Below are positions 1-44,000 of a stretch of DNA of 64,000 nucleotides, piece by piece (positions within the stretch are counted from its first letter, which is position 1; the number at the start of each line of letters is the position of its first letter). The notes beneath the pieces were generated by a model. It had not been told where the DNA came from. It worked only from the letters and a program-made list of their open reading frames with translations, and made no database searches. The DNA lies in contig NC_086101.1 of the NCBI RefSeq assembly GCF_963921235.1, forward strand, positions 15,810,001-15,874,000. The letters run 5' to 3'. Source of the stretch: Mobula hypostoma (taxonomy: Eukaryota). The translations under genes were made by a program, and so were the position numbers.

Positions 1-210
1 TTTGGCCACCAGGGAGTCCTGCTTCTTGCGGATGATGAGGAGGTGCTCGACGAAGCAGTCCCCCAATTTACAACATGTCTCACCAATGCAGAGGAGGCCA
101 TATCAGGAGCACCAGACATAATAGATGTCCCCAGCAGATTCGCACGTGAAGTGTTGCATCATCTGGAAGGACTGTTTGGGGCCCTGAATGGAGGTGAGGG
201 AGGAGGTCTA
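1..210 (-). mobile_element. Penelope-like element GIY-YIG fragment
   Basis: Minus-strand translation IQGPKQSFQMMQHFTC...CIGET...LGDCFVEHL resembles the PLE endonuclease at 30350-30770. Confidence 0.7.
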
Positions 211-1893
211 AGGACAGGTGTTGGGTTGGCATGGACTAGATTAGTCGAAGAATAGAATAGAATTGAACTTTATTGTCATTGCTCAAGACAACGAGATTGT
301 GGTGCTACTGTACTCCAGTCCGTGCAAAACAGATATTTACAATGCATGTGGCATGGCTTAGTTAAACAAAAACAATACTTACATGCAACAAATGACTTTG
401 CTAGTCCATAATACTCAAAGGCCATTGTCATTATTAGAAGAACCTGTTTTTGTGTTATAGTGCTCGATGGATCCAATTATTTAAATGAAAACCCAATTAG
501 AGTGAATATAAAGTCCATTGTTGTGCAAATGTTGTTATACTGAGGTGGTGATTAGGGTTGTGTAGTTTGGCTCAAGAACCAAATGTTTCCTGATCAGACA
601 AGGAATAATATCCATGAATTATATAAGGAAAGGGGTCCGGCATCTTTTGTGGAGTTAGTGCGATCTCCCTGGGTCAATAGAGGAGGCAGAGATCACTTTA
701 GGTCAATAACGGTGATCAAGAGAATCGTAGTTACACACAGGACAATGGATAGAATGGAGGGAAGTGAACCATGTACAGGTGGAGGAGATGAGTGTAATTA
801 GACACCATTAGTTTAATTAGTCCAGCATTAACTGTGGGCTGAAATCTTGTTCCTGTGGTCTACTGTTTGACATTCTATGTCCTATGTCCTTTGTTCCGAG
901 AACAGCTTCTTCCCCATTGCTGTCAGAGTTTTGAACGATTCGCCTCTTTCATGTCCCTGTCCCGGTGGTCCTGCTGCTTCCCGAACCTTTAATTCTATCT
1001 AATCACTTCAGAGGTCAAATACATTTATTATTGAAGAACATATACTGTTTCCCCCCTTGAGAATAATTTTCTTGCGAGGATTTACAGGAAATTAGAGAAA
1101 TACAACAGAATTTATGACAAACTATGACGAACAAAGGCTGACAAACAACCAGGGTGCAAAAGAAGGCTTATAATAAACAAAAATAAATAAGTGATATTGA
1201 ATTTGTAAGTTCTTGAAAACGAATCTATTGGTTGTGGAGTCAGTTTAGCGCTGAGGTGAGTGAGATTGTTCACACTGGTTCAGGAGCCTGATAGTTGTAG
1301 GGCAGGGTTTGAAACCTGGGATCCACGGACCCCTTGCCTAATAGTATTAGTCCATGGCATAAAAAAAGATTGGGAACCCGTGTTGTAAGGTAATAACTGT
1401 TCCTGAACTGGCAGCATGGGACTTAAGGCTCTCGTACTTCATGCTTTATGTTAGTAGTGAGAAGACAGCATGGCTTGGATGGTGGGATCCTTGATAATGG
1501 ATGCTCCTTTCTTGTGGCAGTGCTCCTTGTAAATAAGGTGAAGCAGAGACTTCCGCAAAAGAGAAAAAACACAGAGATGAGCACTTGAAGCTTTTCTAAG
1601 CAAAATGAACTAGTTATCCACATCCTCCCTCATCGCGAGCAATCCCCACTTATGATATCCAGTCTCTCTCGCTCTCCACGCTTTTATTCTCTCTACCCAT
1701 ACCCTCCTCACAGCAATCCAATCTAAGCTATGTTTTCAATTTTGCCCAGTTCTGTTGAAAACCCACTATTCCAGAACTTTAACTCTGCTTGATTCTCTGG
1801 AGATCCTGTTTAACCTGCTGAATACCCCAGCATTCTTTGATTTTATTTCGGATTTCTAGCATCTGCGGGCTTTTATTTTGCTTTACGACTTAC

Positions 1894-1934
1894 CATCCAA
1901 GGTCCTTCCTCCAATGGGGGTGGAGGTAAATCAT
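1894..1934 (-). CDS. Gene A cytoplasmic micro-exon c (41 nt), proline-rich
   Basis: attaattttacag|ATGATTTACC...TTGGATG|gtaagt; reads DDLPPPPLEEGPWM. The frame inherited from the TM exon is the only one open across exons a, b and c. The next (terminal) exon was not identified. Confidence 0.65.
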
Positions 1935-2730
1935 CTGTAAAATTAATGATGTGCATATTAATGCAGACACTGGCAGATTTACGACTATCCTCTGCTTTCT
2001 ACAGGCACCCACACTCTCTGCGTAAAGAACTTACTTCTGACATTCCCCCTATACTTTCCTCCAAACACCATAAAATTATGGCCCCTCATATTAGTGAGTT
2101 CAGCCTTGGGAAAGAGTTCACTTGATCTCTGCCTCTTATCAGTTTGTATTTCTCTATCAATCCACCTCTCTCCTCCTTCGCTCTAAAGAGAAAAGCCCTG
2201 GCTGACTTAGCCTATCCTCTCCAATCCACGCAGCATTGTGGTAAATAATGATGCGATGAGAACTTAATAGAAACATCGAAAACCTACAGCACAATACAGG
2301 CCCTTCAACTCACAATGCTGTGCTGAACATGTACTCATGTTAGAAATTACCAAGGGTCACCCATAGCCCTCTATTTTTCTAAGCTCCATGTACCTATCCA
2401 GGAGTCTCTTAAAATACCCTATCATTTCCACCTCCACCATCGTTTCCGGCTGCCCATTCCACGCACTCATCACTCTCTGCATAAAAAACTTACCCCTAAC
2501 ATCTCCACACATCTCAACACAATACACAAAGGGTTTTATAGAGCTGCAGATTGCCAAGGGCGCGAGGCTAAGTGGTGGAAGGCGGGGTTAATTCTGATGA
2601 GTATCCACAGGTCAGCATGGACAAAAAGGGCCGAATGGCCAGGTCCTATGCTGTATTACACTCTAACTAACATCACAGACAAGTCTGCCTAATACACTCA
2701 CACGGATTGGCTTTGAGGGCTTTTACTTAC

Positions 2731-2768
2731 CCGCTGCGGTGCTGTCGTTCAGAGTAGATAGCTCCTGT
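2731..2768 (-). CDS. Gene A cytoplasmic micro-exon b (38 nt)
   Basis: ttttccactttttctcttcag|...|gtaagt, after a 97-nt intron; reads QELSTLNDSTAA. Confidence 0.7.
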
Positions 2769-2865
2769 CTGAAGAGAAAAAGTGGAAAAGGTTTATTCCA
2801 TATGAGTCCCTTTACATTGCAATGGCACACATTCTGTAAAACACGAGTTTGTAGCAAGCACTCAC

Positions 2866-2884
2866 CTTTGAACCTGGAGAGAAT
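2866..2884 (-). CDS. Gene A cytoplasmic micro-exon a (19 nt)
   Basis: ctttcttctctccttcccttcacag|ATTCTCTCCAGGTTCAAAG|gtgagt; reads NSLQVQR in the frame set by the TM exon. Confidence 0.7.
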
Positions 2885-2924
2885 CTGTGAAGGGAAGGAG
2901 AGAAGAAAGATACTGATTAGTCAA

Positions 2925-3560
2925 TAAACACAAGTGATTCTGCAGATGCTGGAAGTCCAGAGAACCACACTCAAAATGCTGGATGAACTCAGCAGGTCAG
3001 GCAGCACTTATGGAAAGCAATAAACAGTCGATGCTTCTGGTCAAGAGCCTTCAACAGGACTGGAAAGGAAGGTGGTAGAAGCCAGAACAAGAAGATAATG
3101 TGAGGGGAAGGGAGTGGAGTACAAACTGCCAAGTGATAGGTGAGACCAGGTGAGGGGGAAGGTGGGCAGGTGATGGAGGGCGCATGAAATAAGAAGCTGG
3201 GGGGAGGGTGATAAGCAGAACAGGTGAAGGGCTGAAGATGAAGGAATCTGACAGGAGAGGACAGAGGATAATTGAAGGGAAGGACAAGGGGCATCTGAGG
3301 AAGGAGATGATTGGGTAAAGAGGAGGAAAGGGGCTGAGAGGGTAACCAGAATGAGGAATGGAAAAAGAGAGAAGGAGAGAAGCGGAGAGAAACCAATGTT
3401 AATGCCACCAGGTTGGAGGCTACCTACATGGAATATGAGGTGTTGCTCCTCCACCCTAAGTTTGGCCTCATTGTGGCGGTAGAGGAAGCCATGGACAGTC
3501 ATGTCAGAATGGGAATAGGAAGTCAAATTGAAATGAGTGGTCACCAGGAGTGTGCTTGTT
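2925..3560 (-). mobile_element. Penelope-like element 3' fragment
   Basis: THFNLTSYSHSDMTVHGFLY...EEQHLIFHVGSLQPGGINI, followed by a pyrimidine-rich tail like that at 30780-31170. Confidence 0.8.
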
Positions 3561-5476
3561 CACAGTTCCACCCAGGAGGGAAAGGTGGCTTCAGAATGCA
3601 CTGGTTTCCCACTTAGCACTCATAACCGAGTCAGTTGTATCATATGGATACTTGCCTCCATTGGGCAGCACAGGGAGTATAAAAGAGGACTGGAGGACTG
3701 TGCACAATTCAGGTACCACGCTGAAGGAAGGATGTGATTGCACTGGAGAGGGTGCAAAGACGATTTACGAGGATGTGACCCACTGCCACTCATTTAGAAA
3801 TAAATTGTTCTTGGTCTTTTCATTCTTGTTTATGTTATTTTTATTTAGGGACACAGGGCAGTAACAGACCCTACCAGCCCAACGAGACTGCTCTGTGCAG
3901 TTACCCCCACGTCACCAATTAACCTGACAACTTGTATGTCTTTAGGATGTGGAGGGAACTGCTGCACCCAGTGGAAACCTACGCGTTCACGGGGAGAACA
4001 CACAAATTCCTTAGAGTCAGTGGAAGGAATTGTGCCACCCCTTTGCTGGCACTGTAACAGTGTTACAGGAACCACAATGTCACCGCGTCACCCCACTATT
4101 CTACCTTCACTGTCCCTGATGAGCATTTCTTTTTGCACTACGATGCATTGCACTGCTCTCCTTGCACCAGGCTGTTGTCTTGTCCTCATGGCTGTATTTG
4201 TTGTTGTATTTAATGTTAAGACGTACACCAGTGAGCTTCAAACAGGGAAGGAATTTCATCGCATCTTGGAGTGTTTGACAATAAATTTATCCAGCCTAGT
4301 CATCAGAGAAAGCTGCAGAATTGGGCACAATTACAATTAGATGCTGACTGACAGGGTCTTGTGCCTCTTGATCGCACTGATGTTCAATACTGGGACCCAC
4401 CAACTCGAGACAGTCCGGTATTCACGGGTGTCCTTCGTGTAAATTTTCACCCACATTACTAACCTTTGTGCACAGAGGAGAGGCCTAAACTCTGAATGTA
4501 CTTCATCGCCATGACAGTATCGCTGGATTTCAAGCACGGAGCAGAGTCCTGGACTCGGAGTGCACCTTCTCAACTATCCACATCACTGGGTGCAGAGTGG
4601 AGTGCTGACCTCTACCTCCTTCATGTCCCTGTCTATGTCCATACACCTTAATCTGACCCCTAACTCCATTCACTGTCCTGAAAACCATTCCTACAAACTT
4701 AAAAGCACAACAAAGTCTGAGCCATGATCTCAAGAGATACCACAGCTCGCACCATTATGACCAAAGATTTATGGGCCATCTCAGTCAGCAGAGATGAGTT
4801 GGGCTGAAGGACCTGTGTCTGTGCTGTTGAGTCACAGCTCTACTACCTCAATTGCCCTGCTCATCTACACATGCTGGTGAACCCCTTGGGCTTTCCAGAT
4901 GTTCCTCACCTTTAAGGATATAAGGCATTGGTCAAAGAACATTGGCAGTGTTGTGTGCAGTTTTGGGCTCCATATCTGAGAAACAATGTGCTGGCATTGG
5001 AGAGGATCCAGAGGAGAATGACAAAACTAATCTGAGAATGAAAGAGTTAATGTATGAGGATTGTTCACCGTACTCGCTGGAGTTTAGAAGGATGGTGGGG
5101 AGGGATCTTACTGACATCTATCAAATACTGAAAGGCCTAAACAAAGTGAATTTGGAGTGGATATTTCCAATATTGAGAGAGTCTTGGACCAGAGGGCACC
5201 GCTCAGAATAGGAGATAAGAAGGAGCATTTTTAGCCAGAAGATTCATTGCCACAGATGAATGTGGAGGCCACATCATTGGGTATATTGAAAACACAAGAT
5301 GATAGGTTGAGTATTGGTTTCTAAGGTTATGGAGGAAGGCAGGAGAATGGTGTTGAGAGGGAAAACAAATCCCTCAATGTGGAATGGTAGAGTAATTCAT
5401 TGGGCCGAATGGCCAAATCCTGCTATGTCTGATGATCCTATACTGGCCATAGAGGTAAATGATTCAGCCTCCTTAC

Positions 5477-5590
5477 TGTCTACGCTGCGTAGTTTTCTAC
5501 GAAACAGGATGCTGATGAGCAGGATGCTCCCTGATATTCCAAACACTGTGGACAGGATCACCAGGAGAATTGTGACAAATTTCATTTTGC
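5477..5590 (-). CDS. Gene A transmembrane exon
   Basis: Acceptor ttttctcccccacag and donor gtaagg; 114 nt, phase 1-1, in frame with the V exon: RKMK-FVTILLVILSTVFGISGSILLISILF-RRKLRSVD (26 uncharged residues, then a basic stop-transfer stretch). Confidence 0.85.
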
Positions 5591-6534
5591 CTGTGGGGGA
5601 GAAAACATCTCAGAACACACGAGCACAAATGGGCCATTTGGCCCTTCGAGACTGGTGAAGCACGCAATGATATGGCAACTGACCTGAAAGTATTTAACCC
5701 CACTGGTGAAATCATTCCTGTCCCTTCCACACCCCCTCCTCACTATTCCAGGGCAGGAACAACAGGGAAGTTGCACTTCCAATAATTATATAGGATGACC
5801 AAAAGTTAATAAAGTCACATCGAACGTTGATCTAACATTTATACGTCCTACACTAATCCCATTTATTTTCCTATTAATTTTACTGATAACCGAACCTCCC
5901 CACCTTTTCTTCAAATCCATCCAACTTTTACTACTTCGCAACACACTGAGGGCAATTTAGAGCAATCAATTAAACCACTGACCCACACATCCTTGGGGTG
6001 TGGGAGAAAACTAGAGCAATCGGAGGTGGGGGTTGGCCACACCATCACAGGGAGAATCCATCGAGAATAGGATAGGATAGGACAGTGCCACACCTAGTCC
6101 CAGAGGGGGAAGATGGTGGTGTGTGACTGACTGCTTCACTTCGACCCAGAGTGGGAGAGAACACCTTGTAACTCACTGCCCCACCCAGTCACAGAGGGAA
6201 GAGGACAGTGTGTGACCCACTGCCGTACTGGGTACCAGTGTGAGGGAGGATCGTGTGTGACCCATTGCCACTCTTCTATAATCTGCACACTGAGCCAATC
6301 ATTGTTGATGGGTTGATAAGTGTATGATCTCCAGCCAGTCACCCCAATGTAATTCTTGTTATCTGCAGTCTCCCATCTACATTCAGCAATGGTCAGCCGG
6401 TCCCGTTGGTGATGACACTGGAAGTGAAGGTAGGAAACCGGACAGGGCTCCATGAGTAGAAAGTTGATGGGGGAGGGTGTGTGTCGGTGGGTGGTAATAA
6501 ACTCAGTGTTGTCTCGGACTGTGGAACCACTCAC

Positions 6535-6864
6535 GTGTGTGACTGACTGTCAGCCATACTCCTTCTCCGATTTCCTCGCCAATCCCGTCTATCCGTACTT
6601 TGCAGTAATACATTCCAGAATCGCTCTCCCTCACATCCACCAGCTTAATGGAAGCTTTGAAGGAATCCTCCTGGTCAGGCCCAAGGACGCGACCTGCAAA
6701 CTCTGCCGTCCCGTTGGAGACTTCGGATGTGTTCCGGTACCAGCTGTAGAACACGGTGTCTCTGGTGTGATTGGCATTATGGCTACAAACTATGAGGACC
6801 GTTTCACCCTCACCTGCAAATATACTGGACTGGCCTTGCGTAACCGTGAAACTCTTGCTTTTTG
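6535..6864 (-). CDS. Gene A V-type Ig exon, NCR3/NKp30-like
   Basis: Acceptor ttttccattgcag and donor gtgagt; 330 nt, phase 1-1, open: AKSKSFTVTQGQSSIFAGEGETVLIVCSH...FYSWYRNTSEVSNGTAEFAGRV...DSGMYYCKVRIDGIGEEIGEGVWLTVSHT. Canonical C, W and DxGxYxC. EVSNGTAEFAGRV parallels the human NKp30 segment EVRNGTPEFRGRL (recalled, not searched). Confidence 0.9.
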
Positions 6865-7102
6865 CTGCAATGGAAAAAGGAGAAAGTCAATGCTTCCCAT
6901 TTGGAAGTTGGCCATTGGAGTGAGAATTAAGGCCCAGTGTTAAAGACTGGACACATTCAACATTTGAGATTGTTTGTTGTCAATCGTCAGTACAAGAGTT
7001 TAAAGGAGGATGAAATCATTGTTTCTCCAGTTCTGATGCAGCATCAGAAGGAGACAATAAGCATAAAAACAAAACAAAAAAATATATAAATATGCACTCA
7101 TC

Positions 7103-14867: not shown

Positions 14868-15206
14868 CTCTCACTGTGAGATATGTCCCCGCCCCATATA
14901 TTTCCCATTCCTTTGTCTTCAACTTGCAGAAGTACATCGCAGAATCACTCAGCTGCACGTACTTCAGTTGCAGGGAAACATCTGAGCTGTTAGTGGAGGG
15001 ATCATCCCCTTGAGATGTGGAGAAGTGGTCTGTGTACTCTGCTGTTTCACTGGTCACTTCTGTTCCATTTTGGGCACCCTTGACCCAGTGGTGCGACCAT
15101 ATCTTACTCGTGACATTGTGTCTGCATGGAATAACCACCGCCTCCCCTTCCGTGACAAAAATGCTGGACTTGTCCTGAATGACCACAAACTTCTCAGCAC
15201 CAATGC
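14868..15206 (-). CDS. Orphan NCR3-like V exon (V2), intact ORF and splice sites
   Basis: ctccctgctttcag|GC ATT GGT GCT GAG AAG...CTC ACA GTG AGA G|gtaagt; 339 nt, phase 1-1; VVIPCRH, HHWVKG, DSAMYFC, YGAGTYLTVR. No leader or terminal exon found nearby. Confidence 0.85.
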
Positions 15207-19459: not shown

Positions 19460-19506
19460 TCAAGAGCGAACTGGGAGGTATTTGACTGGGAAGTGTTTGC
19501 CAGGTT
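19460..19506 (-). CDS. Gene B short terminal exon (predicted secreted form)
   Basis: ccactcttcagcttttctccag|AA CCT GGC...TCT TGA = EPGKHFPVKYLPVRS*. The paralog at 41002-41048 differs at only 2 of 47 nt and keeps the acceptor and stop. Confidence 0.65.
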
Positions 19507-20949
19507 CTGGAGAAAAGCTGAAGAGTGGAATTGTTGGTGCATGGACTCAGTACAGACAGAATGGGCCGAATGTCCCCTTTTGAAAGGTCAACTCTCAATT
19601 TCCCTCCCTAGATTCTGCCTGACTTACGAGTTCCTCCAGCATTGTGTTCCTTTCATTCCAGTTTCCAGCACCAGCAGCCTCTTTGGAACTGGTATTGGTT
19701 TATTATTGTCCCATAATCTGAGGTACAGTGAAAAACTTGTCTTGCATACTGTTCATTTTGTCGGCGCCCAACTGCCCACCATTGAGAACAGCTACCATAA
19801 ACGCTCCCTGGGCAGGGCGAAAAGCATTATCAGGGATGCATCTCACCCTAACATGGACTTTTTACTCTCCTCCCATCCGGTAGGTGCTACAGGAGCCTTC
19901 GCTCCCGCACCAGCAGGCACAGGAAGAGCTTCTTCCCCAAGGCTGTGACACTGCTGAACCTCTCATCACAGCGCTAAGCAGTATTGCATCCGTATTGTAC
20001 TGTCTCAGTACTTTTATATTTGTGTGCTGTAGCACTTTTTTATTCACAGTTATTTTGTAAATAACACTATTCTTTGCATTTCTGGTCAGATCCTAAATGC
20101 ATTTCATTGGCTTTGCATCTGTACTCGGCACAATGATAATAAAGTTGAATGTAATCTAATCTAACCATTACGTGGCGCACGGTGAGGTAGTACTGTCCTC
20201 GGTAAATCAATAGCAGAGTGATGTGTAACAGTGACAGAGAAAGTGCAGTGTAGGGAGACAATGTCGTAACGAGGTAAATTATGAGGTCAAGAGCCCATCT
20301 GATCATACCAGGGAACCAGTTAATAGTCTTTTGACCGTGGGATAGAAGCTGTCCTTGCGCCTGGTGGTTTGTGCTTTCAGGCTTTTGTATCTTCTGCCCA
20401 ACGGGAGAGGGGAGAGGGGAGAGGAGAGAATGTCCTGGGTGGGTAGGGTCTTTGATTATGTTGGCAGCTTTACTGATGCAGCAAGAAGTCAGCAGACAGA
20501 GTCCTTGGAGGGGAGATTTAATTTGTGACCACTCACCCCCTCCACTTTTTCTGTGCTGGAACGATTTTGTCATTATCCAGTTGGTGAAATTCCAACAATG
20601 AAAATTAAAAACCTGCAGATGCTGGAAATCTGAGGTAAAAACTGGATATGCTGGAAACGCTCAGCACGTCAGGCAGCATCTGTGGGTAGTGAAACAGAGT
20701 TAATGCTTGAAGTGGAAGATCTTTCCTCAGCACTGGGCAAAACTTGTTTACAAGATTCTTCTTTTTTCTTGTTTACCCTCCTTCTCTTCCCTGAGGACTG
20801 GTTACAGATCTGAACACTTTGCTGCTTCTCTCCCCACAGTAGCTGAGTGACTTGCTAAGTGCCTCGAGCATTTTCCAGCCTTGACCAAATTCTGTTCGGG
20901 TGGTGGGTCTTATTTACTGAGACAAGCAGATAGTTGATGATTGGCTTAC

Positions 20950-21288
20950 CTCTCACTGCGAGATTCGTCCCTGCCCCATACATTTCCCACTGTATTGCCT
21001 CCAACCTGCAGAAGTACATCCCAGAATCATTCGGCCGCACGTCCTTCAGTTCCATAGAAACATCTGTGCTGTTAGTGGAGGGATCACCCCCTTGAGGTTT
21101 GAAGAAGCGGCCTCTGTACTCTGCTGTTTCATTGGTCACTTCTATTCCATTTCGGGCACCCTTGAACCAACGGTATGACCATACCTTATTCGTGACATTG
21201 TGTCTGCATGGAATAACCACCGTCTCCCCTTCTGTGGCAACAATGCTGGACTTGTCCTGAATCACCACAAACTTCTCAGCACCAATGC
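20950..21288 (-). CDS. Gene B NCR3/NKp30-like V exon (V3)
   Basis: 339 nt, phase 1-1, AG/GT intact: EKFVVIQDKSSIVATEGETVVIPCRH...YRWFKGARNGIEVTNETAEYRGRF...DSGMYFCRLEAIQWEMYGAGTNLAVR. Confidence 0.92.
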
Positions 21289-21999
21289 CTGAAAGCAGGG
21301 AGCAAACTTTAAAAATTGGTAAATCGGTTTACTGTGGTCACATTTTGTTCTTCATACATATCATTTTATCACATCGATTCAATGAGTTAGTGTAAAGGAG
21401 GAACAATAGCAGAATGGGGAATGAAGTGTTACAGTTACCGAGAAAGTGCGGATCGGAGCCTGGAAAAGAGGAACCTAGGAGTACGGGTGCACAGCTCATT
21501 GAAAGCGGCAGACAGGTAGTGAAGACAATGTTCAGTACGCTGAGCTTCAGTCAGAGCTTTGCGGACTGGAGTCCAGAAGTTATGTTTCTGTTGTACACGT
21601 CGTTGGTGAGGCTGCACTTGGGATATTTTGTACAGAATTGGCCACCCTGTTGTAGATGTTATTAATTAGAAAGCGCGGAGATATGATTTACCTGGATGTC
21701 GTCTGAAATTGGGGGCCCGAGTTACAAGGAGAGTTTGCATAGACTAGTACTTAATTCTCTGGAATGTAGGAGATTGAGGGGGCGACCTGATAGGGGTATA
21801 TAACACAATAAAGGGCATAGATATTCTGAAAACAGCATTTTACACCGGGAGACCGGGGTGTTGTTAACAGCAAGAGAACATGGGTTTAAGATTAGACGGG
21901 AGAGTTTTGAAAAAGATGTTAGATAATTTCTTCACACAAGCGGTGTTACGTGGTTGAAATGAGCTGACGGAAATGGCGGTGGCGGCGAGTAAATTACAA

Positions 22000-23320
22000 A
22001 CATTTTAAAGCCTTCTAGATAAGTACATGAGTAGGAGGGATTTAGCGGGCTGTGGGCCAAACGCGGGCAGATGGGACGAGTTGGCTGGTTAACACGATCG
22101 ACAAGGACGAGTTGGGCCGAAGGGCTTGTTTCCGTGTTAGGAGTCCACAAAGGAAGGAGGGAGAAGGGAGAAGGCGGCATCCTCAGTGTTCGACCCAGAA
22201 TTCAGCCCACGCTCCTATCCCCCGTCGGCTAGTCAGGGGGTCGATGTCGGAAGCCTGGAAGGGGCTTGTTCTGCTGCGTTTGTTTTTTGTTTTCTGTGTT
22301 GCTCTGCCGACATTGTGGACATTAATGTTGGCGCTGGAATGTGTGGCGACCCTCGGGCTGCCCACAGTGCCTCCGTAGGTGTGTTGGTTGTGAACGCAAA
22401 TGAAGCAGACGAACCTTCCCGCTTTTCCCGCGCTGCCTATTGCCTTCTCCCCCAAGCTGCAGCCGTAAAGGAACAGAAAGTTACTTACTGGAGGAGACGG
22501 TCATTAGCCACAAAATAGCGCCCACCTTCATCGTTACTCCTCTAAAGCAGAGGAGATATTTAGTGTTCGCTACTTCTCCCTTCTTACAGCCGCGCCTCCC
22601 TCCTCGTGCAACCTGTTGGAAAATTGGGAGGGATTAAGTACTGTCCACTGGATTTTTCCAATTGATTTCCGAATCACTGGAACGAGCTGGATAAACCTCC
22701 AGCGGAGTTACAAAGAGATTAGAAGCGGGGGAAGCGTGACAATAAGCGGTTCAGTGACGTTAGGGTCGTTGAGCGATGAGCCACGTCCTCTTCCTGGTAA
22801 GATGCCCTTTTGGACTGACAGATTCCAAACACAGTTTCACGTTCAAATCCCTCAGCGCGCAGCGCGCGAAGAAGGCAATTCAGCCCACGCCGATCGCCGG
22901 CTCTGCTCAAGTGCTGACTGGGCTACTCATTCTCCCCAACTTCCCTTCCACTCCTCAAATAATTGGTACCCACACTAGAGACAATTCCCAGATCCAATCC
23001 ACAAGTCGTAGAGGCGCGAAATGAATCGTAGCACCCGGCGGTGTTGGGGGAGCCCACACGGCTGGTGCATCCGCAGGGAAACAGGTGGAATATGCAAACT
23101 CCACCCATACAAAATGCACCAAAAATCGGGGTCGAACCCGTGGACGCAGGAGCTGCGAGAAAACAGCGCTAACAATTGCGGCAATGGTTCTACGTATCAA
23201 ACCGAAATGGTTAATGTAAGCTTACGAAAATGTCGTATCTCAGTTAATGTAAATTATTTCGCATTTGACTTCAATCCCCACAACAACGTGTCACTTTAAC
23301 GGAAGAGGTTAAATAATTGG
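22000..23320 (-). promoter_or_regulatory. CpG-rich region around and upstream of the gene B leader (probable promoter); paralog at about 44750-45920
   Basis: Visibly CpG-dense compared with the CpG-poor flanks, spans the start codon and is conserved in the duplicate. No TSS evidence. Confidence 0.4.
22489..22531 (-). CDS. Gene B leader (signal peptide) exon
   Basis: ATG AAG GTG GGC GCT ATT TTG TGG CTA ATG ACC GTC TCC TCC A|gtaagt. Joined to the V exon it gives MKVGAILWLMTVSSSIGA-EKF. Conserved at 45084-45126. Confidence 0.85.
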
Positions 23321-41001: not shown

Positions 41002-44000
41002 TCAAGAGCAAACTGGGAGGTATTTGACTGGGAAGTGTTTGCCAGGCTCTGGAGAAAAGCTAAAGCATGGAATTGTTGGTGAATGGACTCAGTACAGACA
41101 GAATGGGCCGAGTGTCCCCTTTTGAAAGGTCAATTCCCAATCTCCCTCCCTAGATTTTGCCTGACTTACAACTTCCTTCAGTACTGTGTTTCTTTCATTC
41201 CAGATTCTTTGGAACCTCTGCAGCCTCTTTGGAACTCGTATTTGTTTATTATTTTCTCATAATCTGAGGTACAGTGAAAAACTTGTCTTGCATACTGTTC
41301 ATTCTGATCAGATCATTACGTGGCGCATGGTGAGGTAGTACTGTACTCGGTAAATCAATAGCAGAGTGAAGTGTAACAGTGACAGAGAAAGTGCAGTGTA
41401 GGGAGACAATGTCATAATGAAGTAAAGTATGAGGTCAAGAGCACATCTGATCATACCAGGGAACCAGTTAATAGTCTCATAACAGTGGGATAGAAACTGT
41501 CCTTACGCTTGGTAGTTTGTGGTTTCAGGCTTTTGTATCTTCTGCCCAGTGGGAGAGGGGAGAGGAGAGAATGTCCTGGGTGGGTGGGGTCTTTGATTAT
41601 GTTGGCAGCTTTACTGAGGCAGCAAGATGTCAGCAGACAGAGTCCTTGGAGGGAAGGTTTGATTTGTAACCTCTTTTTCTGTGCTGGATCGATTTGGTCA
41701 TTATCCAGTTGGTAAAATTCTAACAATGAAAATTAAAAACCTGCAGATGCTGTAAATCTGAGGTAAAAAAAAAACTAGATATGCTGGAAACGCTAAGCAG
41801 CTCAGGCAGCATCTTTGGAAAGTGAAACAAAGTTAATGCTTGAAGTGGAAGATCTTTCCTCAGCACTAGGCAACAATTGTTTACAATATTCTTCTTTCTT
41901 GTTTACCCTCCAGCTCTGCCCAGAGGATTGGTCACAGATCTGAACATTTATCTGCTTCCCTCCCCACAGTAGCTGACTGACCTGCTAAGTGACTCTAGCA
42001 ATTTCCAGCCTTGACCAAATTCTGTTCGGGTGGTGGGTCTGATTTGCTTAGACAAGGAGATGGTTGATGATTAGCTTACCTCTCACTGCGAGATTTGTCC
42101 CTGCCCCTTACAGTTCCCATTGTATTGCCTCCAGCTCGCAGAAGTACATCCCAGAATCATTCGGCTGCACGTCCTTCAGTTGCATAGAAACATCTGTGCT
42201 GTTAGTGGAGGGATCACCCCCTTGAGGTTTGAAGAAGTGGCCTCTGTACTCTGCTGTTTCATTGGTCACTTCTGTTCCATTTCGGGCACCCTTGAACCGG
42301 TGGTACGACCATACCTTATTCGTGACATTGTGTCTGCATGGAATAACCACCGTCTCCCTTCTGTGGCAACAGTGCTGGACTTGTCCTGAATGACCACAAA
42401 CTTCTCAGCACCAATGCCTGAAAGCAGGGAGCAAACTTTAAAATTGGTAAATTGGTTTACTGTGGTCACATTTTGTTCTTCATACAGATCATTTTATCAC
42501 ATCGATTCAATGAGTTAGTGTAAAGAAGGATCAATAGAAGAATGGAGAATGAAGTGTTACAGTTACCGAGAAAGTGCGGATCGGAGCCTGGAAAAGAGGA
42601 ACTAGGACTACGAGTGCACAGCTCATTGAAAGCAGCAGACAGGCAGAGAGGACAATGTTCAGTACGCTGAGCTTCAGTCAGAGCTTTGCGGACAGGAGTC
42701 CAGAAGTTATGTTTCTGTTGTACAAGTCGTTGGTGAGGCTGCACTTGGAATATTTTGTACAGAATAGTCCACCCTGTTGCAGATGTTATTAATTAGAAAG
42801 CGCGGAGATATGATTTACGTGATGTCATCTGAATTTGGGTGCCTGAGTTACAAGGAGAGGTTGCATAGACTAGTACTTTATTCTCTGGAATGTAGGAGAT
42901 TAAGTGAGTGACCTGATAGGGGTATGTAACAAAATAAGGAGCATAGATATTCTGAAAACAGCATTTTTCACCGGGCAGAGGGTGTGCTACTGTTATAAGG
43001 GGGGAGGGGGGGCATTTCGTGACCCACCCAGATGCAAGACACAGACACTGAAGTACTAGGGACAGGACAGGACAGGACTAGAGACTAGAGTTAGGGACGT
43101 GACTGGATGCAGACTAGGAGTTGGGTCAATAACACAGTCTTAGGCTAGGACATTGGCTGGACAAGCGGGATCAGGACAACGAACTGGTAACTAGGAGCCT
43201 GGGCTTGGACTCCCAGCCAGAGACTGGACAAGGACCCAGAACCTGGGTCTTGACTTGGGCTCGGAGCTCGGAACTAGGCAAGGAGATGACGTAGCTACAG
43301 GAAGTGGCGTGGCTACAGCACGGCACGTGAGGTTCTTGGACATGACGAGGGAACTCCAGCCCAGGACGAGGAATCTCCTGCACCAGGCTGGGCGAGGCAC
43401 AAGGACAGGCTGAGGCACATGGACCGGATGAGAACACGAAGGCTTGACTTGGTCGAGGGAGATAGGAACGCAGAGCCTTGGTCGAGGGAGAACAGGAACA
43501 TGGAACACAGTGCCGGCACCCCTCCTTGGGAACAGGACGTAGGGCTGGGACTCATACACAGAACAGAGAGCCGGGACCCCTCCTTGGGAACAGGACGTAG
43601 GGCCGGGACTCATACATGGAATGTTGAACACGACGAGATGGTTCCCAACACATGGTCGCCGTAAATGGTCAGACCTACCTAGCGAAGGCGTGGGCACAGA
43701 GACAGTTCCCAACTCAAGGTTGCGGCAAACAGCCTGACCTACCTAGCGAAGGCGTGGAACAGAGACAGTTCCCAACTCAAGGTAGTGGCAGTCGGCCGGA
43801 CCTACCTAGCGAAGGCGTGGACACAAAGAGACAGTTCCAAACAACAAAAGACAGTTCCTTATCCAGACACAGCAAGGCTCCGGTCTTGCTTCTGTGGTAG
43901 AACTTTACAGCGATAAAGGCAAGGACACAGGCGAGGTTGCAGGTAATTCTTCAGGCCAAGGTTGCAGGTGAGGCTTCAGGCGAAGGACTACAGAAAGAAG

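Follow-up and report, generated by a model that had tools for sequence, protein, structure and literature searches.

A tandem NCR3-like receptor gene of Mobula hypostoma predicted to lack the tyrosine motifs of its family

A probable silent or modulating copy beside a putative signalling paralog

The DNA analysed here is a stretch of 64,000 nucleotides from the ray Mobula hypostoma (contig NC_086101.1, positions 15,810,001 to 15,874,000), hereafter called the window. Its positions 1894–5590, read on the minus strand, are exons 5–8 of LOC134346461, a gene already present in RefSeq as an uncharacterised protein. The predicted product belongs to the elasmobranch NCR3/NKp30-like family and has the topology of a type I membrane protein; LOC134346461 is a recent tandem duplicate. 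The reading that we favour, with a probability of about 0.6, is that this protein would have kept ligand binding at the cell surface and would no longer recruit SH2 partners, being a silent or modulating copy beside a signalling paralog; an LPPPP sequence in its cytoplasmic tail would be a by-product of fast change in that tail.

The sequence of events would be as follows. The ancestral state of the family would combine an uncharged transmembrane (TM) segment and a tail encoded by micro-exons with three tyrosine motifs that would dock SH2 domains. After a tandem duplication, the ectodomain and the TM segment would have evolved at the pace of the neighbouring copy and the tail faster. The tyrosine motifs would have been lost in the LOC134346461 copy, whose protein would still reach the surface and bind ligand without signalling via the family tyrosines, and would serve its signalling paralogs as a silent or modulating partner. 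Two single-base changes in an ancestral LPSPQ would have given the LPPPP sequence, which would not have been selected as an Ena/VASP docking site.

The relatives aligned over the tail were the paralog LOC134346462 (P0002), Hypanus sabinus LOC132393824 (P0151), Hemitrygon akajei (P0155, a truncated model) and more distant Heterodontus and Scyliorhinus models. Common to their aligned tails are the TM type, an FRRK stop-transfer sequence, a linker encoded by micro-exons, QRQELSTLNDST, and the tail end. The linker of LOC134346461 (RefSeq model P0152) is shared in this form with P0002 and reads QRQGLSTLNDST in P0151, with an invariant QR in six of the six aligned tails. The ray gene thus has the uncharged TM segment and the micro-exon tail with a QRQ-containing linker of elasmobranch receptors of the NCR3-like type with several variable (V) domains, its tail being 70% identical to that of P0002 over the shared columns. 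The alignments point to both features as inherited family traits.

A motif scan of P0002, P0151, P0004 (Scyliorhinus LOC119975535), P0027 and P0157 (both Heterodontus francisci) found three tyrosine motifs in each tail: (i) a YxxM of the form I-Y-x-P-M; (ii) an immunoreceptor tyrosine-based inhibitory motif (ITIM) of the form I/V-Q/H-Y-A/T-x-I; (iii) a YxxL of the form G/E-Y-D/E-E-L. The scan found no YxxM, ITIM or YxxL in the tail of P0152, for which the RefSeq model is the only source beyond the window. In this protein, the tyrosine position of the YxxM is a Cys (ELICPPM), a block of 62 residues bearing the ITIM is absent from the RefSeq tail, and the tyrosine position of the YxxL is an Asp (DYDDNEMN). 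The sole tyrosine of the tail lies in no [ILVM]-type motif. Note that the Heterodontus isoform P0153 is also without the ITIM block, so that alternative splicing may play a part in the missing block.

LOC134346461 resembles the elasmobranch NCR3-family genes (P0002, P0151, P0004 and the Heterodontus models) in its TM type with mid-helix glycines, in the linker encoded by micro-exons and in the tail end QPEE-TNQ; its third V domain (V3) is 90% identical to the second V domain of P0002. It differs from these relatives in that it has three V domains instead of two, has a modelled tail without the YxxM, the ITIM, the YxxL and the 62-residue block, and is alone in carrying LPPPP. The predicted protein adds a three-V, tyrosine-less variant to an NCR3-like family already known in sharks. 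The shark NCR3 family was reportedly described by Kinlein et al. (2021, Immunogenetics 73:333). The gene also recalls the tyrosine-less or stub-tailed copies of paired immune receptors, being a tandem duplicate that has kept its ectodomain and lost inhibitory tyrosine motifs; typical activating partners of paired receptors, however, acquire a basic residue in the TM segment together with a short tail, neither of which is found in LOC134346461. The tandem ray pair, one copy of which has retained a YxxM/ITIM/YxxL tail such as sharks also have, whereas the other has kept its ectodomain and rapidly lost all three motifs, offers a natural contrast for tail function.

Two features of the horn shark Heterodontus francisci may be recorded here. 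In P0027 and P0157, the unit formed by the pair of 19- and 38-nucleotide exons is present three times (LQxQRQxTxIPxxTS). Moreover, the TM helix of these two models and of P0153 has a central Glu (AVEVG in P0027 and P0157, AGEIG in P0153), at a position that is Ser, Gln or Gly in rays; an acidic TM residue is unusual in a receptor and might mark a contact with a partner.

Rate of change in the tail

Unique changes were counted in LOC134346461 and in its paralog, with Hypanus as the outgroup. The two copies are nearly even in the V region (6 for LOC134346461 vs 5 for the paralog) and in the stalk plus TM segment (4 vs 3), whereas the tail has 15 unique changes in LOC134346461 against 4 in the paralog (chi-square 6.4). 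By these counts, the ectodomain and the anchor of LOC134346461 are as constrained as those of its paralog, and its tail has changed faster.

The proline motif

The preliminary description of this locus had singled out the segment DDLPPPPLEE in the tail as a match to the class I consensus for ligands of EVH1 domains, and had proposed that the receptor may signal to actin rather than through adaptors with immunoreceptor tyrosine-based activation motifs (ITAMs). At the sequence level the match holds: the segment, encoded at 1932–1906 plus the preceding codon, fits the core motif [FWYL]PxΦP of Ena/VASP EVH1 ligands (PMC8789275), in which acidic flanks are known to raise affinity. The class I EVH1 ligands ActA, zyxin, Robo CC2 and PCARE likewise have this core, which is LPPPP in the ray tail, between acidic residues; the ray segment would be cytoplasmic and may be unstructured. 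Other proline-binding modules were considered for the motif, namely SH3, WW, profilin and GYF, and none fits better than EVH1: canonical SH3 ligands need a basic residue, WW domains bind PPxY or PPLP, profilin binds longer proline runs and GYF domains bind PPG. The signal peptide, the one TM segment and the RRK stop-transfer sequence would place the motif segment on the cytoplasmic side. A full-length AlphaFold model of the protein, built from an alignment of nine rows, has a mean predicted local distance difference test score (pLDDT) of 36, which is too low to judge tail disorder.

The earlier description had named non-conservation in orthologs as a refutation, and as far as the available relatives go the motif is not conserved: none of those with a tail carries it at the aligned position. 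The aligned residues are DLPSPQLEE in the paralog P0002, DLTSPQLDE in Hypanus P0151, and SLNSSQLAG or SFTSFLSTG in Heterodontus, and the pattern [DE][FWYL]PPPP occurs in no other protein among the 157 retrieved. Because the aligned residues of the paralog or Hypanus keep them, the D, the L, the first and third prolines, the following L and the EE are ancestral in rays; new in the LPPPP copy are only a Ser-to-Pro and a Gln-to-Pro replacement, one base change each. The human proteome contains 4,994 matches to the EVH1 core motif, and the core alone is a weak binder (PMC8789275), so that a single unconserved match carries little weight. In the tight ENAH ligand PCARE, of which LPPPP is the core, affinity comes from a 14-residue flank (PMC8789275). 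Proven EVH1 ligands are often repeated or have affinity-raising flanks, whereas the ray motif is present in a single copy, is unconserved and has no extended flank such as that of PCARE. The tail peptide might bind an EVH1 domain weakly in vitro, which alone would be no proof of that signalling route. Altogether, the proposed route to actin in place of ITAM adaptors was not borne out, the motif being unconserved and the uncharged TM segment being a family trait that goes with tyrosine-motif tails.

Relationship to NKp30 and the transmembrane segment

The assignment to an NKp30-like receptor is upheld by a comparison of the V3 domain with all solved structures, in which the first four hits are human NKp30 (E values of 1.8e-9 to 7e-9). 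V3 is a VJ-type, non-rearranging V-set domain encoded by one exon and closest to NKp30, as in the NCR3/NKp30 family; its exon ends in a J-like G-x-G-x-x-L-T-V sequence and its phase is compatible with that of the TM exon. The likeness to human NKp30 (NCR3; PDB 3NOI, 3PV6, 6YJP) lies in a V domain of the VJ type that does not rearrange, in the type I membrane topology and in a very short stalk. Unlike the ray gene, human NKp30 has one V domain, a TM Arg, which pairs with CD3zeta/FcRgamma (PMC5371597), and a short tail encoded by one exon; the ray protein has three V domains, whose exons are spliced together in the RefSeq model and give the same translation from the window sequence, a charge-free TM core and an acidic tail of 87 residues encoded by tiny exons. 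The gene is not a single-V gene starting near 5590: a leader and three V exons lie upstream in the window and the last 46 residues are encoded outside it.

The four exons and coordinates given earlier for positions 1894–5590 stand, the micro-exon junctions being identical to those of the RefSeq model. The TM exon and the 19-, 38- and 41-nucleotide exons each have a pyrimidine-rich AG acceptor and a GTAAG or GTGAG donor, and only one of the three frames is open throughout the 212 nucleotides obtained by joining exons 5–8. This frame reads KMK, then a hydrophobic span of 26 residues, FVTILLVILSTVFGISGSILLISILF, then FRRKLRSVDNSLQVQRQELSTLNDSTAADDLPPPPLEEGPWM. Since the joined exons match the RefSeq protein model exactly, the splicing prediction for exons 5–8 is not a chance result.

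The 26-residue span contains no R, K, D or E, and the basic residues of the region are found only at its edges, with R-K-M-K directly outside and RRK inside. The TM segment had been described as uncharged in contrast to that of human NKp30, and this is correct for the core; the span is without the basic TM residue of mammalian NKp30. Because an uncharged TM segment is the normal partner of tyrosine-motif tails in this family, it is no evidence for an unusual signalling route. The small-xxx-small patterns noted in the helix (SxxxG, GxxxS) are present, but the argument for dimerisation drawn from them falls, such patterns being too common in TM helices; the mid-helix glycines are the only pattern feature of the TM segment that is common to rays.

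RNA-like contigs

Logan contigs from three small public runs of one study, of uncertain type, were compared with the locus. The runs hold about one tenth of the words of window positions 1000–6990, which is roughly the exon share. In two contigs, X1 record 3 and X3 record 21, V3 is followed immediately by the TM exon; the one-base offsets at this joint correspond to a G shared by both sides of the junction. In X3 record 21, the TM piece ends exactly at the predicted donor at 5477 and is followed by 879 nucleotides that are not on the intron, and X2 record 15 ends at the V3 acceptor plus 20 nucleotides from an upstream exon. The contigs thus behave like RNA and show that V3 is spliced to the TM exon and that the donor of the TM exon is used. 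Exons of 19–41 nucleotides are too short to place in contigs, so that the micro-exon joints rest on the RefSeq model, canonical sites, the open frame and peptide conservation. A faint depth in the otherwise empty bin 2600–2799 in two runs is compatible with the 38-nucleotide exon and proves nothing.

At window position 5547, in the TM exon, the window has a T and all three runs have a C, which turns the coding-strand codon ACA into the synonymous Thr codon ACG. Either this difference between the reference and the sequenced animals is fixed, or it reflects a common allele. Repeats fill the introns that separate the tail exons (window 2200–2600, 2800–3600 and 4800–5400), with a very high summed contig depth of up to about 97,000 over the three runs; they are abundant and probably transcribed families of transposable elements.

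Alternative explanations

Several points weigh against a silent or modulating copy whose proline motif is a by-product. The motif match is good, the LPPPP core having two acidic residues on each side, and LPPPP is the core of a real high-affinity ENAH ligand in PCARE (PMC8789275). Single lineages often gain short docking motifs, so that non-conservation lowers the odds of function without excluding it; moreover, the motif could be conserved within devil rays, since the M. birostris model P0156 is partial and stops in V3. The faster change of the tail could reflect positive selection rather than relaxed constraint. Finally, the window does not reach the last 46 residues or any skipped ITIM exons, so that the RefSeq model is the only basis for this part, and the micro-exon joints themselves are not visible in the reads. 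From the gain of the motif in the very copy that lost all three tyrosine motifs, one may suppose that the tail has acquired a new function, DDLPPPPLEE recruiting Ena/VASP directly and coupling ligand binding to actin assembly in place of the lost tyrosine signalling. Robo recruits Ena/VASP in this manner through the LPPPP of its CC2 motif. The fit to [FWYL]PxΦP with acidic residues on both flanks, the cytoplasmic position expected from the type I topology, and the transcription and splicing seen in the RNA-like contigs agree with such a coupling. It would link a natural killer-type immunoglobulin (Ig) receptor straight to actin assembly, an unusually direct connection, and would provide a dated example of a receptor switching its signalling route by a few point mutations. 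We nevertheless hold it to be very improbable: the motif is present only once and belongs to a weak class whose chance matches run to thousands, no relative with a tail has it, and it is mostly ancestral (D, L, P, P, L, E, E), with just two new residues.

The two remaining alternatives concern the loss of the tyrosines rather than the gain of the prolines. LOC134346461 might still be inhibitory if other transcripts included ITIM exons located before the window start and skipped by the single RefSeq model. Heterodontus has isoforms with and without the ITIM block, P0153 lacking it like P0152, and the approximately 12.8 kb of gene range beyond the window start leave room for skipped exons. Such an ITIM exon of LOC134346461 is, however, hypothetical and placed outside the window, and two of the three tyrosine positions of the family carry other residues in exons present in the model (ELICPPM and DYDDNEMN), which makes this explanation unlikely in our view. 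That the gene is on its way to becoming a pseudogene, with a tail decaying neutrally and a protein without a function of its own, would account for the 15 vs 4 unique changes in the tail and for the loss of all conserved tyrosine motifs, and gene decay does occur in this cluster, since a frameshifted V copy lies upstream. Yet the frame is intact over eight exons, all with canonical splice sites, the V and TM parts show no acceleration (6 vs 5 and 4 vs 3), and spliced RNA-like contigs are present in three runs; we consider decay distinctly unlikely.

Exon map of LOC134346461

The RefSeq model P0152 (467 residues) was retrieved by a tail-directed protein search under the RefSeq name LOC134346461 [Mobula hypostoma]. 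Its residues 1–421 are the exact translation of eight window exons on the minus strand, all bounded by GT-AG introns (Table 1), and its layout is a leader, three NKp30-like V domains, a TM segment and a tail. The gene range is 35,327 nucleotides and reaches about 12.8 kb before the window start, the C-terminal 46 residues being encoded in that part, up to about 12.8 kb out; the remaining tail exons were sought in window positions 1–1893 and not found there. An HMMER search of 1.8 billion proteins with V3 as the query gave close relatives in rays and sharks, and a word-index protein search with the V3 exon returned no match.

Table 1. Exons of LOC134346461 in the window
Exon and content	Window positions	Strand	Supporting observations
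Exon 1, start codon and signal peptide MKVGAILWLMTVSS	22489..22531	-	Phase 1, GTAAGT donor; residues 1-15 of P0152 matched exactly
Exon 2, first V-set Ig domain (V1), 339 nucleotides	20950..21288	-	Phase 1-1; Pfam V-set E 2.4e-11; within exact spliced translation
Exon 3, second V-set Ig domain (V2), 339 nucleotides	14868..15206	-	Phase 1-1; Pfam V-set E 1.4e-10; within exact spliced translation
Exon 4, third V-set (VJ-type) domain (V3), 330 nucleotides	6535..6864	-	Pfam V-set E 1.3e-12; J-like GEGVWLTV at end
Exon 5, 114 nucleotides: short stalk RKMK, uncharged TM helix, FRRKLRSVD stop-transfer	5477..5590	-	Splice sites, exact RefSeq translation
Exon 6, 19-nucleotide micro-exon, (N)SLQVQ(R)	2866..2884	-	Canonical AG/GT, exact RefSeq translation; peptide kept in paralog and Hypanus
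Exon 7, 38-nucleotide micro-exon, (R)QELSTLNDSTAA	2731..2768	-	Splice sites, exact RefSeq translation
Exon 8, 41-nucleotide micro-exon, DDLPPPPLEEGPWM	1894..1934	-	Splice sites, exact RefSeq translation; DLPPPPLEE encoded at 1932-1906

Several V-set Ig exons are present in the window on the same strand as the TM exon. Two candidates for separate genes were rejected on the exact spliced translation: a 'complete secreted V gene' at 19460–22531 and a 'leaderless V cassette' at 14868–15206 are together exons 1–3 of LOC134346461. Read correctly, the tail, the 'secreted V gene' and the 'leaderless V cassette' of this window are exons of one annotated gene.

Neighbouring copies in the cluster

The other V exons of the window belong either to LOC134346461 itself or to a frameshifted copy, and searches of the rest of the window by blastn and tblastn found no further paralogous TM exons or micro-exons. 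A second leader-like exon, MKVGAILWLLTVSS, lies at window 45126–45085 on the minus strand and is followed by a V1-like exon at 42421–42078 on the same strand. The match of this V exon to P0152 splits into two frames with a one-base overlap at 42356, and another residue takes the place of the invariant Trp of the V domain (SYHRFKG). The two exons probably represent a pseudogene copy of the 5' exons of this gene family.

The neighbouring RefSeq model P0001 (Mobula hypostoma, 'polymeric immunoglobulin receptor-like') has five NKp30-like V domains, four of which are about 82% identical to V3 of LOC134346461, and ends without a TM segment; it is either a real secreted form with several V domains or a model that merges tandem V exons.

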